A stretch of 64,000 nt of DNA from Neoconidiobolus thromboides FSU 785 (Eukaryota; Fungi; Entomophthoromycota): contig MU626286.1 of the NCBI GenBank assembly GCA_025603075.1, positions 94,239-158,238 of the forward strand, in the 5' to 3' direction. Position numbers and translations under genes: made by a program. Positions 7,519 to 13,120 of the stretch are shown in pieces; position 1 is the first letter of the stretch, and every line of letters starts with the position of its first letter. The notes below the pieces were generated by a model. It had not been told where the DNA came from. It searched no databases and saw only the letters and a list, made by a program, of their open reading frames with translations.

Positions 7519-9177
7519 TTAATGTTTTTTACTTTCGAGCTTTAACTCACCTTGTAAAATTAAGTTTTCTCCTTCATGCTTGAGCTCTTCTTTATGCAAT
7601 AACTTTCCTAATAATACTTTAGCTTTTCCTTTGAGTTTATCAGTGTGACCACCTGAGTTTCTTTTGTCATTTGGATCATGGCCATCAACATGATGATCCT
7701 TATTACCTATAGCGCTATGATCTTTGGTATTTGTAACTTTGTTTTCAGTTCTTAACACACTGGTTTCTTTGTGATCTAGATTTACATTGTTATTTAATGG
7801 ATTGGCTTTAGCAACATCATCTGGTTTTGTTCCAACATGAATAGGGTCATTAGTGGCAATATCATCTATATTACATTTACCATTATCATTTAAAGCCCCA
7901 TCTTTGGTACCATGTAACTTAGCATCATGAGCTTTGTTATCATGTACTGTAGTATTGTGCAATTTATTATCATGTACTTTAGTAGTATCCGATTCAGGAT
8001 TAGGTACATTTGAGCTAGCAATAAGAGGATTGACGCTAGAAACTGCAGTTCCAGTTCCAGCAATTGCAGCAGATGGGATAACAGAATGCTTTACTTTACT
8101 ATTATGACTCTCTTGATGAATACCATGAGCATGGCTATCATGTCTCAAATCATGACTATCTTTCTCATGCTTTAATGTGTGACCATGTTTGTTATGGGTT
8201 GAATCATGTTGTACCTTTGAAGCATCAGGGTAATGAGTATCAATTATACCAGGCATTGGAGTCGCTGCTAAACCGGTTAACTTTTTTTCACCAGTATGGA
8301 TATGAGGATGAGATTTATGTTCATCATCGTTAACATTATTAGTACCTGTAATTGATACATGATGTTTATTATCAAGATCTCCATTTGAATTAACTGGGTA
8401 ATTAGTATCTCTTACACCGTTATTTAAATGATGATCTTCTGTACTATTATTATGAAATTTGTCACTGATGGTATTGTTTAATGCTGGATTATTATGCTCA
8501 AATGGCTGGTTTTTGAACTCTTCGTTTGTAATATCTTCTGGGATTGGCTTAAAATTATTAGAGGTAACACCGTTATTATTTAAGTTGTCATGATGGCCAG
8601 CAGTGTTAGAAATACTATTTAAATTACCATGAGTATTAGACGTAGCCCCAATGTTGTTTAAATTGTTATGGTTATCAGCAGTAACAAGGTTACTATTTAA
8701 ATTTTTCTGGTTAGAAGTAGTAGAATTACTATTTAAGTTGTCATGGTGATTAATAGTAGAAGGAATGCCGTTTAAATCGCTATTATGATTATTGTTATCA
8801 AGGTTGATATTTAAATTAGTACGGTTATCACCAGTGGTAGTAAAACTATTTGATTTGTTATGTTGATTGCTATTAGTGGTGCTATCTAAATTGATATGAT
8901 GGTTAGTAGGAGAAAGTTTACTATTTAAATTATGATGATTAGTAGTAGCGGTGGTAGGATTGTTACTTAAATCAGCATCTTCATTACCAGTAATACGGTT
9001 ATCACTTAAACTAAGATTATCATTATTTAAAGCTCCATAGTTACCAGTAGTAGTAGTAGTACCATTTAAACCATCGGTATGACCGAATGCAGAATTTGTG
9101 GTGTTAGAAATATTATCTTTAGGATATTCCGAGTTAAGGTGGTGGCTTTGAGTGTTGTTATTTTCTGTAAGATTCAT
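7519..9177 (-). CDS. Asn/His-rich intrinsically disordered hydrophilin-like protein with CsbD-like C-terminal helix
   Basis: Intact 552-aa intronless ORF with H-H-x-N-L-N repeats and the terminus DKLKGKAKVLLGKLLHKEELKHEGE. The function is inferred. Confidence 0.75.
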   Translation of the reverse strand: MNLTENNNTQSHHLNSEYPKDNISNTTNSAFGHTDGLNGTTTTTGNYGALNNDNLSLSDNRITGNEDADLSNNPTTATTNHHNLNSKLSPTNHHINLDSTTNSNQHNKSNSFTTTGDNRTNLNINLDNNNHNSDLNGIPSTINHHDNLNSNSTTSNQKNLNSNLVTADNHNNLNNIGATSNTHGNLNSISNTAGHHDNLNNNGVTSNNFKPIPEDITNEEFKNQPFEHNNPALNNTISDKFHNNSTEDHHLNNGVRDTNYPVNSNGDLDNKHHVSITGTNNVNDDEHKSHPHIHTGEKKLTGLAATPMPGIIDTHYPDASKVQHDSTHNKHGHTLKHEKDSHDLRHDSHAHGIHQESHNSKVKHSVIPSAAIAGTGTAVSSVNPLIASSNVPNPESDTTKVHDNKLHNTTVHDNKAHDAKLHGTKDGALNDNGKCNIDDIATNDPIHVGTKPDDVAKANPLNNNVNLDHKETSVLRTENKVTNTKDHSAIGNKDHHVDGHDPNDKRNSGGHTDKLKGKAKVLLGKLLHKEELKHEGENLILQGELKLESKKH

Positions 9178-9218
9178 TTTGATTATTTATTTTTTATAAA
9201 GTATGCAATGCCCATTTG

Positions 9219-9259
9219 TTTATATACTATAGTTTTAGACATTCAATTTTATGACGTAA
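9219..9259 (-). promoter_or_regulatory. CRE-like site plus TATA box of the 7519-9177 gene
   Basis: TGACGTAA at 9252-9259 and minus-strand TATATAAA at 9226-9219, separated by 25 nt. Confidence 0.6.
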
Positions 9260-10472
9260 CTGAATGCGATCAGAGTTTAGATAGATGTAAAAATGACCTC
9301 ATTTTTTAAAAGATTATTGAGTTTATGTAAGTTGATAATGTTATTTAATGGATGATTATTCTCACTACAATAACTATTACAAAAGTTTGTGATTTTAATT
9401 GATGAATTTGTACCAGTATATTATTTTTATTACAATGCTGTTTTGAATAAAGCTTATTAGTCTAAATTTTATATTATATTATTTTAATATCGAACTACTA
9501 ATATAAAAATAGTAGTAATTAAAGGCCTGTCAATGACAAATATGAGCTTGTCTAAAGATATCAAAATTTTATGCCAGTAAAAAACCTGATATTTACAACT
9601 TATGACTACTTCATTACTTATATTATATCAATCAAAACTTTATATTTTTAATATTTTTGTTTATTTTTAAACTTTAACCTTAAATTTAAAAATTCGGTTT
9701 TATTACCAATTATGAGATCACTTTAATTATTTTGTTAAAAATGTTTTAGATCATTTTAATTTTAAATTTCTAATTTACTATAAATATTTTGTTGTTACAA
9801 AAGGGCTAATATGATTGGTTCTTTCATGATTTTAAATGTTTATTAAAAATAAGAGTATAATATTGTTTTATAAGTAATAATTCTATTTTAATATAAATTT
9901 TTATCTAGAATGTAGCTTCAAAGTGTAAGTCAAAAGTTTTATACTCTTTTTTTTTTCATTGTAAAGTGTTTATAAAGGATACAACATCTGCTTTTATTAA
10001 ATAAACTAGTATACATTAATATTGATTTTTTGTATCCTGCTATAATTTATATTTCCGTTTGATGATTTTTTAGTAAATAAGGTTTTAAAAAAGATTTAGA
10101 GTTCAAATTTACCTCAAATTACATACTTTCTATTAATTTACTGTAGATAAAAACAGTTTTGAGGGTTATTAAGGGGATGAGACAAGATATATCAACTGTT
10201 TAAACAAGGTCAACTTTTTCTAACAAAAAACCGTGTAAATAAAACCTCTGAATACTTCCAAGCTCCAATTTGGTCATTTTTAGTAAATGGTTCTTATTTT
10301 CTTATCGTACGATGTATATTCTAAGTTTTACTAGAAAATTCAAATTGTAGATCTGAAACTATATTTGTATATTTAGGTTTTAAGAACTTGTTAAAAATCC
10401 ATATTACCTGTGTTTTTCTCGAAAAGTTTTCAAATAGAACATTGACACATCATTTCTTTTCGATGAGATCCG

Positions 10473-10513
10473 TGACATCATCATGATGAATCAAAAATAT
10501 TAGAGTATATAAA
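10473..10513 (+). promoter_or_regulatory. CRE-like site plus TATA box of the 10556 gene
   Basis: TGACATCA at 10473-10480 and TATATAAA at 10506-10513, separated by 25 nt. Confidence 0.6.
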
Positions 10514-10555
10514 CAGAATGTAAATGTGTTAGAAGGTAAATAAAATAAAAACAAC

Positions 10556-11641
10556 ATGTATAGTGAAAATCAAGATCAATTAAATTACACTCATAACAAG
10601 GATTCTAATTTGAATAACCTTGACTCCAACCAAGCCCATACCACAGGCCCCACTGTTGTAAAGAATCCCACTTATAATAACAACGTTAACTCATCCAATA
10701 CTACTGGTATAAGTAGTAATCCAACCCACAAACAATACAATGATTTAAATTCGGTGTCATATAATCCTAATAATACCAATGACCTTAATAATCTTAATAC
10801 TGCCACTGCCACTGCCGCGAGTGGTAAACCAAGTAACAACCATCTCAACAATTTGAATTCAGAGACATACAATAGTAATACTGTTAACACCAGTACCACC
10901 AACCATAGTTATACCCCAAGCGAGACCCAGAATAGCACCACGTTTAATAACTCTAGTAATAACCCCGGATTAAGCAATAACCTTGATAATTCCTTTGGCG
11001 CCAATAAGTATAATAGCCAATACAGTAATAACAATGAAGCTTACGATCATGAACGTGTTAATCCTAATACCAATATCCATTCTATCAATAATCAAGCCCA
11101 TGGAAATAATACTTTAGCTGATCCTATTAATGATCATAGTAGAGTCAATAATAATCTTGACCATTCTAATCCTGGCGATAAGCATCATAATAACCACTCT
11201 AATCATGGCAAAACTCATGGAACAGCACTAGGTAGCATGGCTATTGCTATGGGTGCTAATTCGGCAGATATGGCTTGTGTTATGGCATCTCAAGAAGAAA
11301 GCAGACAGCATGAAAATCAACTCAATGATTTTAATCAAACTCATCCAAATCAACAACATAATGATTTGAATCAAACTCATGGTAATACTCATACTACTCA
11401 ATCACATAACATGAACCATAGTAATTTAAATAAACATGACAATAGTTTAAATCAAACTCACAACAATAACCTAAATCAGACTCATCCAAATCAACAATAT
11501 AATGATTTGAATCAAACCCATAGTAACACTCATACTACACAACCACACCACAAGGTAGATCACAGTGATACTAAAGATCATAAGGAGAGCGGTATTAAAG
11601 AAAAAGTGAAGCATGCTATTGATAAAGTATTTCACCATTAA
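10556..11641 (+). CDS. Asn/His-rich hydrophilin/dehydrin-like disordered protein, paralog 1
   Basis: Intact 361-aa ORF with NQTH..Q.NDL repeats and the terminus KESGIKEKVKHAIDKVFHH. Clearly homologous to 12266-13120. Confidence 0.8.
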   Translation: MYSENQDQLNYTHNKDSNLNNLDSNQAHTTGPTVVKNPTYNNNVNSSNTTGISSNPTHKQYNDLNSVSYNPNNTNDLNNLNTATATAASGKPSNNHLNNLNSETYNSNTVNTSTTNHSYTPSETQNSTTFNNSSNNPGLSNNLDNSFGANKYNSQYSNNNEAYDHERVNPNTNIHSINNQAHGNNTLADPINDHSRVNNNLDHSNPGDKHHNNHSNHGKTHGTALGSMAIAMGANSADMACVMASQEESRQHENQLNDFNQTHPNQQHNDLNQTHGNTHTTQSHNMNHSNLNKHDNSLNQTHNNNLNQTHPNQQYNDLNQTHSNTHTTQPHHKVDHSDTKDHKESGIKEKVKHAIDKVFHH

Positions 11642-12177
11642 GTTTAAGTTTTTGTAAATAAATAATTTATGCTGTAATTTTGTTTTTAGTTTTTATTATA
11701 ATTTTAATCATATTTTTATAATTGAAGCAATAATACAACTAAATATTTTGTCTGTGTTCTTTATCAGTTTTTCTACTCAATAGTGCTTAAAATAAGGAAG
11801 AATAAATTAAAATGAAAAAGTTATAGTCCTATTTTTTATTTTAGTTTAAAATGGTCCCTATAAATTTTAAGTTATTGAGACGATAGGTAGCCATTTATCA
11901 GCTGTCTAAACAAGGTACATTTTTAATAATGAAAACTAAAATAACAATATCTTATCATGTTTTCCTCATTAAACCCTCAGTTATCTTTAACTATTCAAGG
12001 TTCTTATCATTTTTATCGTATGATTATTATTTCAATTCTACTGAAAGATAAAAATCCTTGATTTAGAACTCCATATTTTTTGTATTGTTGAGTTTCTTAT
12101 GTTTCATGTATTTTTCATGATAATAAGCTTTTAGAAAAAATAGTGACACATCATTCTCATTTTTTTGAAAAAAATCG

Positions 12178-12218
12178 TGACATCACCATGATAAGATAAG
12201 AAAATCCAAGTATATATA
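12178..12218 (+). promoter_or_regulatory. CRE-like site plus TATA box of the 12266 gene
   Basis: TGACATCA at 12178-12185 and TATATATA at 12211-12218, separated by 25 nt. An upstream TGACACATCAT is shared with the 10556 promoter. Confidence 0.6.
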
Positions 12219-12265
12219 AAATGCAAGAAAATGAGTAAGAAAATGAAAAATAAAATAAAATCAAT

Positions 12266-13120
12266 ATGAATAATCAAAATCAATTAAGCTCTACCCATAA
12301 GAAGGATACTAGTTTAAGTAACCTTGACTCTAACCAAGCTTATTCTACTGGTTCTCAACTTAGCTCTGGCTTAAACTCGGAGATGTACAATGCTAATAAT
12401 AATAGTAATCTTAATGCTACCAATATTTCTACTGCTACTGCTGCAAGTAGTAAACCAAAAAATAGTTATCTCGATAACTTAAATTCTGAGATGTTTAATA
12501 ATAGTAAGGCTAATACTAGTAACACTAATCTTAGCTATATTCCAAGTGAGACCCAAAATAACAGCTCATTGAATAATTCTAATAATAAGACTGGGTTGAA
12601 CAGGAACTCTGATGACCCTTTTAAAGGTAATAAGCACAATAATAATCAATATAGCAATGCCAAATTATCTGGATCAGTAATTGATAATACTGCTGCCATG
12701 AGTGTCAATTCACAAGATATTGCTTCTTCTATAACTGCCCAAGAAAAGGATAACATAAATAATAATCAATATAACAGCAATGAAACTTATAATAGTAACC
12801 AATATAATAATACTAAACCATCTGGATCAGTAATTGATAATACTGCTGCCATGAGTGTTAATTCACAAGATATTGCTTCTTCTATAACTGCTCAAGAAAA
12901 GGATAAAAAGCATAATACCCAATATAATAATAATCAAGCTCATAGTAATGAACGTATTAATGCTGATAGTAATATTCATTCTATTAACAGTCAGACCCAT
13001 ACCAATACTAATACTACTCAATCACATAATGTGGATCATAATAATATAGATAAGCATCATGAGGAAGGTGGTATTAAAGAAAAGGTAAAAAATGTTATCG
13101 ATAAAGTATTCCACAGCTAA
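12266..13120 (+). CDS. Asn-rich hydrophilin/dehydrin-like disordered protein, paralog 2
   Basis: Intact 284-aa ORF sharing N-terminal (NLDSNQA, ATA.SSKP, PSETQN) and C-terminal (GGIKEKVKNVIDKVFHS) blocks with the 10556 gene. Confidence 0.8.
   Translation: MNNQNQLSSTHKKDTSLSNLDSNQAYSTGSQLSSGLNSEMYNANNNSNLNATNISTATAASSKPKNSYLDNLNSEMFNNSKANTSNTNLSYIPSETQNNSSLNNSNNKTGLNRNSDDPFKGNKHNNNQYSNAKLSGSVIDNTAAMSVNSQDIASSITAQEKDNINNNQYNSNETYNSNQYNNTKPSGSVIDNTAAMSVNSQDIASSITAQEKDKKHNTQYNNNQAHSNERINADSNIHSINSQTHTNTNTTQSHNVDHNNIDKHHEEGGIKEKVKNVIDKVFHS
12668..12905 (+). repeat. Near-perfect ~85-bp internal duplication (period 153 bp)
   Basis: The sequence encoding SGSVIDNTAAMSVNSQDIASSITAQEKD starts at 12668 and again at 12821. 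The two differences seen are gtc/gtt and gcc/gct. Confidence 0.92.

Follow-up and report, generated by a model that had tools for sequence, protein, structure and literature searches.

We find that three genes in a segment of the genome of Neoconidiobolus thromboides, an insect-associated fungus, fall into two unrelated kinds, both encoding hydrophilic proteins with predicted disorder. Judged by sequence similarity, the last ~45 residues of the first, ORF1, are a diverged CsbD-like (PF05532) module, and ORF1 belongs to a genome-expanded family in which a C-terminal module of this size is carried on long low-complexity regions of varied composition. The second kind, ORF2 and ORF3, are old tandem duplicates under purifying selection; in each, the N-terminal half is conserved, small residues form an island, and the C-terminus bears a single Lys-rich amphipathic helix. 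Since ORF1 is a diverged CsbD-like member and ORF2/ORF3 are a separate old tandem pair without detectable relatives, the three genes do not form one new three-gene system; a stress role is plausible. Entomophthoralean fungi rely on discharged conidia that do not live long and on resting spores that do; to our knowledge, very little of their stress biology has been worked out in molecular terms.

Three genes for hydrophilic, predicted-disordered proteins

The window (the whole 64-kb stretch of DNA that was analysed) contains three intronless ORFs, one divergent and two tandem, at the positions given by an earlier sequence-only reading, and BLASTP bears out its view of ORF2 and ORF3 as paralogs (5e-37).

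7519..9177, minus strand: ORF1, 552 aa, Asn/His/Thr-rich, predicted disordered, CsbD-like module at its end
10556..11641, plus strand: ORF2, 361 aa, Asn/His/Ser/Thr-rich, predicted disordered, paralog of ORF3
12266..13120, plus strand: ORF3, 284 aa, Asn/Ser-rich, low in His, predicted disordered, paralog of ORF2

All three are real genes. Their open frames far exceed the length expected by chance for the base composition (in DNA of 26.6% GC, an open run has a chance of ~1e-11 at 284 codons and ~4e-22 at 552 codons), and the sequence of ORF1 is identical to a public gene model. The dN/dS of ORF2 and ORF3 is low, and the core of a duplicated island has accumulated synonymous changes only. Lastly, each ORF is flanked by a TATA box ~50 nt 5' of the ATG and an AATAAA 3' of the stop codon.

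As first described, Asn, His, Ser, Thr, and Asp dominate all three proteins (54-58% of residues combined), and aromatic residues (10-15 F+Y+W per protein) and Cys (1, 1, and 0 in ORF1, ORF2, and ORF3) are few. Asn makes up 17.8%, 22.7%, and 21.8% of ORF1, ORF2, and ORF3, respectively; His reaches 9.6% and 9.4% in ORF1 and ORF2 but only 3.9% in ORF3, to which the description as His-rich does not extend. The proteins are strongly hydrophilic (GRAVY of -1.18, -1.49, and -1.25) and all are predicted to be disordered. AlphaFold2 models ORF1, from the single sequence, without secondary structure at a mean pLDDT of 37 (0.39 in the Atlas model of ORF1), and ORF2 at a mean pLDDT of 38; look-alikes in the ESM Atlas all scored <0.8, which is the noise level.

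The least hydrophilic stretch of ORF1 is a short patch of small residues:

8038..8082, minus strand: Ala/Gly/Ser/Val patch, ORF1 residues 366-380, Kyte-Doolittle mean 1.28 over 15 aa

One hydrophobic patch per protein is a loose description, because ORF1 has two (residues 300-314 and 366-380) and the island of ORF3 is present twice. A membrane span in the small-residue patches was considered and ruled out at a Kyte-Doolittle maximum of 1.28 over 15 aa; patch 366-380 is too short and too weakly hydrophobic to be one. The charged amphipathic C-terminal helix attributed to each protein is upheld in ORF2 and ORF3, where it has the top hydrophobic moment. The ORF1 tail is indeed charged (42% K/R/D/E), but it is absent from that protein's top hydrophobic-moment windows, and single-sequence AlphaFold2 of the whole protein gives it neither helix nor other secondary structure (pLDDT 40-46).

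The tail of ORF1 is a diverged CsbD-like module

7534..7653, minus strand: diverged CsbD-like (PF05532) module, putatively helical, ORF1 residues 509-548, from Pfam, hhalign, and BLASTP

CsbD is the sole family that Pfam lists for the ORF1 tail alone (E 0.0019, 18.5 bits) and for whole ORF1 (12.9 bits), in both cases below the curated cut-off of 40 bits, as are in-genome relatives of the same architecture (24-34 bits). A CsbD profile built from the fungus's own genome scores ORF1 at 12.7 bits (E 6e-6 for one sequence), and hhalign of the tail against 16 in-genome CsbD domains gives E 1e-4 at a probability of 57%. By BLASTP, the tail matches the C-terminal module of L012, a low-complexity protein of 568 aa encoded elsewhere in the genome, at 7e-7, and the tail of a second protein, L013, at 8e-5. 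A canonical five-repeat CsbD protein (170 bits) in turn recruits the tails of L012 (4e-23) and a third protein, L014 (4e-21), in jackhmmer. Membership of ORF1 thus runs over a two-step chain, from canonical CsbD to the L012/L014 tails and from the ORF1 tail to the L012/L013 tails. The family signature in our alignment A3, G-x2-K-x3-G-x11-G-x6-G, recurs with the same spacing in residues 509-548, which keep the invariant G16, K19, G23, and G35 and the near-invariant G42 (A3 columns). A PDB sequence search with the tail was empty. Because Pfam, profile, hhalign, and BLASTP agree, and place the match at the very C-terminus, just where the relatives have it, we assign the tail to this family.

Across the genome there are 27 CsbD matches, among them further proteins in which a low-complexity region is followed by a C-terminal CsbD module (568, 165, and 407 aa; Pfam CsbD 3e-8, 4.5e-8, and 3e-5). 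In ORF1, Asn, His, and Thr abound in the low-complexity region. The undescribed system that had been suggested is not supported for ORF1, which belongs to a known family and has an architecture that recurs in this genome.

ORF1 is not demonstrably related to ORF2 and ORF3

The same reading had proposed one co-regulated family of three, which we replace with two unrelated lineages, the promoter footprints being common to the duplicates ORF2 and ORF3 only. BLASTP of ORF1 against ORF2 and ORF3 gives E 0.53, with no similarity beyond composition, and 293 of 1000 locally shuffled decoys score as well as ORF1 against an ORF2/ORF3 profile. The ORF1 patch aligned with the ORF2/ORF3 island is not significant (p 0.027 for the islands alone, 0.24 against the whole protein). 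On these three comparisons we reject homology as unproven.

Relatives of the pair were sought more widely. An HMMER profile of ORF2 and ORF3 had no match at E<=0.001 among 1.84 billion representative proteins; the exact sequences of both are missing from the 15-billion-protein collection and there was no self-hit, so this blank speaks to relatives only. Word searches of 5.8 billion protein clusters with ORF2 and with ORF1 residues 300-552 returned only ORF1 itself. The CsbD tail of L012 matched no long protein in the same clusters, which is uninformative on the architecture elsewhere because a 64-aa region is rarely significant in that database.

ORF2 and ORF3 are old duplicates with a constrained island and tail

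12638..12927, plus strand: internal 153-bp tandem duplication in ORF3, carrying the 28-aa small/hydrophobic island twice
11594..11632, plus strand: C-terminal Lys-rich amphipathic helix, ORF2 residues 347-359, from AlphaFold2 and hydrophobic moment
13073..13114, plus strand: C-terminal amphipathic helix, ORF3 residues 270-283, top hydrophobic moment in the protein (0.57)

Across the pair, dS is 1.19 and dN 0.36 (omega 0.30). The N-terminal half has a lower omega of 0.12-0.16, and pN in the tail is 0.12 versus a pS of 0.77. The repeat in ORF3 (1.9 copies with 88% matches in Tandem Repeats Finder) shows constraint of its own. Its copies differ by 0 non-synonymous and 2 synonymous changes in the 28-codon core, as compared to 8 non-synonymous and 1 synonymous in 17 flanking codons (Fisher p 1.1e-4).

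Helix 347-359 is the only one that AlphaFold2 predicts in ORF2 (pLDDT 63-76) and has that protein's top hydrophobic moment (0.53); the ORF3 tail is near-identical. The ORF2/ORF3 tail does not match CsbD significantly (hhalign E 0.025, probability 2%; BLASTP 0.42), the own-genome CsbD profile scores ~0 on both proteins, and the CsbD Gly signature is not kept. The best ungapped match of the tail is helix 1 of ORF1 and L012 (shuffle p 0.002-0.035). This likeness to CsbD helix 1, seen in sequence, is suggestive only, and no other CsbD helix could be present; a remnant of the second, sought downstream of both stop codons, was not found.

Promoters

9219..9257, minus strand: ORF1 promoter, CRE-like TTACGTCA and, 24 nt downstream, TATATAAA (start 49 nt 5' of the ATG)
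10443..10513, plus strand: ORF2 promoter footprints TGACACATCATT, CGTGACATCAtCATGAT, and TATATAAA, conserved with the ORF3 upstream region
12144..12220, plus strand: ORF3 promoter footprints, the same blocks as in ORF2, conserved with the ORF2 upstream region

The upstream blocks of ORF2 and ORF3 are still conserved despite a coding dS of ~1.2; CGTGACATCAtCATGAT of the ORF2 promoter includes a 12-nt palindrome, and both promoters have TGACATCA instead of a canonical CRE. ACGTCA occurs only 5 times in the window. Of 11 distinct CsbD-family promoters, 5, that of ORF1 among them, have it upstream and in one and the same orientation, against an expectation of 0.02 per promoter (P 1.4e-6, or 6e-4 with the C108 trio counted as a single event). 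Dehydrin-like genes in dormant conidia of Aspergillus are under the control of the bZIP factor AtfA (PMC4869263), and together with the ACGTCA sites this control points to a link with stress. We also considered a CRE-25 nt-TATA geometry as the signature of a stress regulon and rejected it. ACRTCA-N20-30-TATATAAA is not enriched genome-wide (50 versus 46 for the control), and other ACGTCA-TATA sites precede unrelated desaturase-like, ATP-citrate-lyase-like, and signal-peptide-like ORFs, whose housekeeping look was judged by eye and without a Pfam scan.

Proposed function and alternatives

The bacterial founders of the CsbD-like family, CsbD/YjbJ, are general-stress proteins, and a fungal member is U. 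maydis Hmp1. CsbD-like proteins are widespread, and as far as we know their molecular mechanism is obscure, bacteria included. The general-stress role of the founders makes a stress role plausible for ORF1, which carries the module. So does the CsbD-like MaCsbD of Metarhizium acridum, whose knock-out lowers conidial tolerance to heat and UV-B, as reported in 2025 in the first functional study of a fungal CsbD-like protein (PMC12733939).

We infer a stress or spore role for all three proteins and propose that, in addition to forming the two gene kinds described above, they act as protective or buffering proteins of the cytosol in stressed or dormant cells (conidia, resting spores), a reading to which we give an even chance. 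The long hydrophilic region would remain unfolded and retain water or ions, with metals as possible ligands of the His pairs in ORF1 and ORF2. The C-terminal helix of ORF2/ORF3, or a helical hairpin in ORF1, would fold on demand and could serve self-association or attachment to membranes or client proteins, as has been suggested for dehydrin K-segments and CsbD-type proteins. Transcription of ORF1 probably runs via an ATF/CREB-type bZIP site, as that of several canonical CsbD genes here apparently does. A bolder version, which we regard as doubtful, is a lineage-specific N. thromboides toolkit that places a CsbD-derived C-terminal helix module on interchangeable low-complexity regions (Asn/His, Thr/Gly/His, or Ser/Lys). 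ORF2/ORF3 would be its minimal end-point, with helix 1 surviving alone as an amphipathic anchor that converged functionally on the plant dehydrin K-segment, and bZIP sites would drive joint expression in spores.

Windows of 60 aa in which N+Q reaches 35-45% and charged residues only 5-8%, in proteins with disorder predicted throughout, would also suit prion-like or condensate-forming Asn-rich scaffolds, such as RNA-protein granule components or regulators, whose low-complexity region drives phase separation rather than shielding. We consider this unlikely: the high His, Asp, Ser, and Thr and the scattered charges are unlike classical yeast prion domains, Pfam finds no RNA-binding or other partner domain, and ORF1 carries a module from a stress family. 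Zn, Ni, or Cu buffers or metallochaperones, with HH and NQTH motifs binding the ions and the helix merely aiding solubility or oligomerisation, would fit the His of ORF1 (8 HH pairs) and ORF2 (3 HH pairs) and the GHHTTG-type repeats of CsbD-tailed relatives on another contig (C12). ORF3, however, is low in His though its N-terminal half and tail are kept; constraint on the pair thus does not bear on His-richness, and a metal role as the main one seems quite unlikely.

Could these instead be fast-evolving orphan genes, shaped mainly by an AT-rich genome and of little or no specific function? The absence of detected relatives, a composition that is extreme in a 26% GC genome, and the absence of exact ORF2 and ORF3 sequences among public protein models argue for this, but omega is 0.30 at nearly saturated synonymous sites and lower still in conserved blocks, the promoter footprints are conserved, the island core changes only synonymously, and an AT bias gives no advantage to His codons, all of which makes it improbable in our view. 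Secreted or cell-wall mucin-like proteins share the Ser/Thr/Asn-rich composition and nothing else. The N-termini are polar without a hydrophobic signal sequence, the C-termini are charged helices rather than GPI signals, and Cys is almost absent, so we give this explanation hardly any weight.

These findings are not surprising enough to overturn current views. The expanded CsbD module, fused to diverse disordered regions, is natural domain-swap material that could reveal both the module's role and what the disordered part contributes. ORF2/ORF3 are a clean orphan disordered pair in which segment-specific constraint could show which parts matter.

Comparison with known protective proteins

Plant dehydrins (group 2 LEA proteins), which are defined by the K-segment, resemble the three proteins in that they are disordered and hydrophilic, are in many cases rich in His, and carry a Lys-rich amphipathic helix. 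Counted by hand, 4 positions of the ORF2/ORF3 tail are identical to the 15-residue K-segment consensus and 3 are conservative. However, ORF2 and ORF3 lack Y and S segments and have a single helix, at the terminus, Pfam finds no dehydrin (PF00257) or LEA family match at E<=1 in any of the three ORFs, and the tail fits the K-segment no better than CsbD helix 1, resembling both about equally and neither significantly. Hydrophilins, for example yeast Hsp12, Sip18, and Stf2, are defined by Gly >6% and a hydrophilicity index >1. All three proteins are strongly hydrophilic (GRAVY -1.2 to -1.5), but only ORF1 passes on Gly, and marginally (6.2%); at 3.6% and 2.8%, ORF2 and ORF3 do not merit the hydrophilin label they had been given, and all three are much longer than typical hydrophilins. 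The fungal dehydrin-like DPR proteins, DprA/B/C of Aspergillus fumigatus (PMC3103405) and AbDhn1-3 of Alternaria brassicicola (PMC3788798), are likewise disordered and associated with stress and spores, and DprA and DprC depend on AtfA (PMC4869263). Their defining repeat is missing here, as had been noted (zero DPR tripeptides across the three ORFs), and no sequence similarity to them was detected. Lastly, typical CsbD-like proteins have 60-180 aa, whereas ~500 residues of Asn/His-rich low complexity precede the module of ORF1, and ORF2 and ORF3 are not demonstrable members. ORF1 nevertheless aligns with the family over its last ~45 residues and keeps the conserved Gly and Lys of proteins with links to stress tolerance, that of fungal conidia among them.

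Gene content and predicted disorder

Neoconidiobolus thromboides is an entomophthoralean fungus of the Zoopagomycota, and its assembly comprises 799 contigs (24.6 Mb, GC ~26%), of which C29 (bases 94239-158238) supplies the window. An orotate phosphoribosyltransferase gene from another of these contigs is identical to NCBI KAI9298174.1 of strain FSU 785. The neighbors of the cluster in the window resemble fungal genes (MFS/TRI12, OPT, class-3 lipase and F-box), and the interval around it runs from an MFS transporter gene to an FAD/NAD oxidoreductase exon. The three low-complexity ORFs lie exactly where the sequence-only reading had placed them:

7519-9177 (-), ORF1, 552 aa
10556-11641 (+), ORF2, 361 aa
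12266-13120 (+), ORF3, 284 aa

At the window's base composition a codon is a stop with probability 0.085, which gives random open frames of 284-552 codons a probability of 1e-11 to 4e-22; frames of this length are not chance. AATAAA follows the stop codon of each gene. The 552-aa ORF1 product is a public gene model, and a 15-billion-protein collection includes it, as it does one gene from another contig of the same genome. The exact ORF2 and ORF3 products were not found in that collection; the ESM Atlas does contain the ORF2 sequence. ORF2 and ORF3 may be absent from public annotation, or modelled otherwise there. Elsewhere in the window, positions 28536-30190 (+, second reading frame) form a purine-rich stretch (GC 39%, AT skew 0.31). 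The long low-complexity protein encoded there is rich in Ser, Asp, Glu and Lys, has SSSDSDSSS and EEDKKE runs and resembles acidic serine-rich proteins of the SRP40/Nopp140 type; the opposite strand (519 aa) and a different plus-strand frame are open as well, as spurious ORFs.

All three products have the composition first described for them (Asn 18-23%, N+H+S+T+D 54-58%), with 10-15 aromatic residues, 0-1 Cys and a GRAVY of -1.2 to -1.5. Their reported lack of the DPR repeat is confirmed, with zero copies in each, while the reported His-richness holds for ORF1 (9.6%) and ORF2 (9.4%) but not for ORF3 (only 3.9%). Structure predictions agree in describing disordered proteins. The ESM Atlas models have pLDDT 0.35-0.39, and AlphaFold2 gives ORF1 a mean pLDDT of 37 with no secondary structure and ORF2 a mean of 38 with one helix only (residues 347-359, pLDDT 63-76). 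It corresponds to the terminal IKEKVKxxIDKVF motif, the stretch with the top hydrophobic moment in both ORF2 and ORF3.

Two gene lineages in one cluster

The three genes had been proposed to form a single undescribed system of related proteins. ORF2 and ORF3 are indeed paralogs (BLASTP 5e-37), the sole such pair in the genome. ORF1, however, matches them with an E of only 0.53, an ORF2/3 profile scores on ORF1 no better than on 293 of 1000 decoys shuffled within 20-residue windows, and the similarity between its patch of small and hydrophobic residues (island) and theirs is within the expectation from composition. By these comparisons, two gene lineages that are not detectably related make up the cluster, which is itself real and mildly interesting but does not amount to one undescribed system of three genes.

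Over 276 aligned codons, a Nei-Gojobori count for ORF2 versus ORF3 gives dN 0.36, dS 1.19 and omega 0.30. The three most constrained places are the N-terminal 31 residues (omega 0.16), residues 64-160 (omega 0.12) and the C-terminal tail (pN 0.12, pS 0.77). By these values, the duplication is old and both copies have been retained as coding genes. ORF3 additionally holds a 153-bp internal tandem duplication, whose 28-codon core carries 2 synonymous changes and nothing else, versus 8 non-synonymous changes in the 17 flanking codons (Fisher p 1e-4). Such a contrast suggests constraint, or else gene conversion, restricted to the small-residue island of ORF3. A family scan, a word search and a full HMMER search of 1.84 billion representatives returned zero relatives of either protein. 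ORF2 and ORF3 are orphan, lineage-restricted proteins, predicted to be disordered and with constrained segments.

ORF1 carries a diverged CsbD-like module

The only Pfam match on ORF1 is CsbD-like (PF05532, residues 510-546). Over the whole protein the match is weak (E 0.11); the tail alone strengthens it to E 0.0019 and 18.5 bits, still below the curated cut-off of 40 bits. The genome has 27 CsbD matches, in small canonical one- or two-domain genes, one protein with five tandem domains, and several long low-complexity proteins that carry the module at the extreme C-terminus. Selected loci, with positions within each locus, are:

L015:671-1462 (G000:C278:2170-2961 in this assembly), 263 aa, five tandem CsbD-like domains, Pfam 170 bits
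L012:648-2354 (contig C12), 568 aa, GHHTTGN-type repeats, C-terminal CsbD-like module
L014:1015-1512 (-) (contig C12), 165 aa, same repeat type as the 568-aa protein, C-terminal CsbD-like module
L013:799-2022 (contig C12), 407 aa, Ser/Asn/Lys-rich, C-terminal CsbD-like module

The three C12 proteins share the architecture of ORF1, and the 568- and 165-aa proteins have GHHTTG-type His/Thr/Gly repeats. A run of N, either present in the assembly or standing for withheld data, at L013 ~850-1300 (G000:C12 ~64350-64800) interrupts the 407-aa ORF and makes its N-terminal half unreadable. A profile seeded on a canonical domain recruits the 568-aa tail at 4e-23 and the 165-aa tail at 4e-21. The ORF1 tail in turn matches that of the 568-aa protein over 60 residues, HHxDGH lead-in included (BLASTP 7e-7), and that of the 407-aa protein at 8e-5. 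The in-genome CsbD profile scores 12.7 bits on ORF1 (E 6e-6 for one sequence), and hhalign of the tail against CsbD gives E 1e-4 (probability 57%). In a 16-domain alignment, ORF1 keeps, at identical spacing, all four invariant columns (G, K, G, G) and the single near-invariant one (G). Based on the profile, BLASTP, hhalign and conserved columns, we place ORF1 in this low-complexity, CsbD-tailed architecture as its most diverged member known, though it falls under the Pfam threshold.

Could the terminal helix of ORF2 and ORF3 derive from the same module? Its best ungapped match within the whole of ORF1 is exactly helix 1 of the CsbD module (scores 23 and 26 versus 16-17 for the runner-up; composition-preserving shuffle p 0.035 and 0.004), and among 166 ORFs of CsbD loci it best matches helix 1 of the 568-aa protein. 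Aligned to a profile from four tails of the low-complexity type, it takes the same register, with 5/500 and 1/500 shuffles reaching the score. Direct comparison of the tail with CsbD is not significant by hhalign (E 0.025, probability 2%) or BLASTP (0.42). The tail has lost the Gly signature, and downstream of ORF2 and ORF3 no second CsbD helix survives. By hand count, the 15 residues compared resemble the plant K-segment consensus about as well as CsbD helix 1. A generic Lys-rich amphipathic helix, possibly derived from CsbD, is the best description of the tail.

Promoter architecture

A TATA box, TATATAAA, lies ~50 nt upstream of each ATG. The duplicated ORF2/ORF3 unit took in the promoter: the upstream regions align, with blocks conserved far beyond the expectation from a dS of 1.2:

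ATCArCTGTyTAAACAAGGT
TTATCGTAyGAT
TGACACATCATT
CGTGACATCAyCATGAT
TATATAAA

The likeness of these two promoters was inherited with the duplication. In ORF1, TTACGTCA sits 24 nt 5' of the TATA box, and in ORF2 and ORF3 TGACATCA sits 25 nt 5' of it, a similar geometry with non-identical motifs. A perfect 12-nt palindrome, TCATCATGATGA (10477-10488), overlaps the TGACATCA site of ORF2 and is imperfect in the ORF3 copy.

Genome-wide, the loose motif-TATA pattern is not enriched (50 versus 46 for the reversed control), and other ACGTCA-TATA sites precede ORFs resembling, by eye, a fatty-acid desaturase, an ATP-citrate lyase and a signal-peptide-bearing protein; the pattern alone is therefore no stress signature. 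ACGTCA itself is rare (5 per 64 kb, both strands counted), and it occurs within 260 nt upstream, in constant orientation, in 5 of 11 distinct CsbD-family genes including ORF1 (P 1.4e-6, or 6e-4 with three clustered paralogs as one event). This lends modest support to a shared control, in which an ATF/CREB-type factor would act on ORF1 as on the canonical CsbD genes. An analogous case would be Aspergillus conidia, where AtfA controls dormancy-associated dehydrin-like genes (PMC4869263). Three small CsbD-like genes (L004, L005 and L009; G000:C108:52019-56894) are clustered, two as an inverted pair; each has an upstream ACGTCA oriented as the gene, and one copy has ACGTCATAAAA...TATATAAA at a spacing equal to that of ORF1.

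Possible functions and known systems

The bacterial founders of the CsbD family are sigma-B general-stress proteins. The one fungal member that has been studied is required for conidia to withstand heat and UV-B (PMC12733939). Given the CsbD membership of ORF1, the hydrophilic disorder of all three proteins, the folding-competent amphipathic tails and the promoter sites, we read a stress role as plausible for ORF1-3. Less likely readings are prion-like or condensate behavior, with N+Q reaching 35-45% in 60-aa windows, and metal binding through His. What the ORF2/ORF3 pair conserves is not its His content.

Compared with known systems, ORF1-3 lack the repeat that defines DPR dehydrin-like proteins and have neither the defining feature of plant dehydrins nor those of the LEA families; among the three, only ORF1 would pass as a hydrophilin, and marginally. 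What is new in ORF1 is its architecture and divergence, in a family that is itself known.
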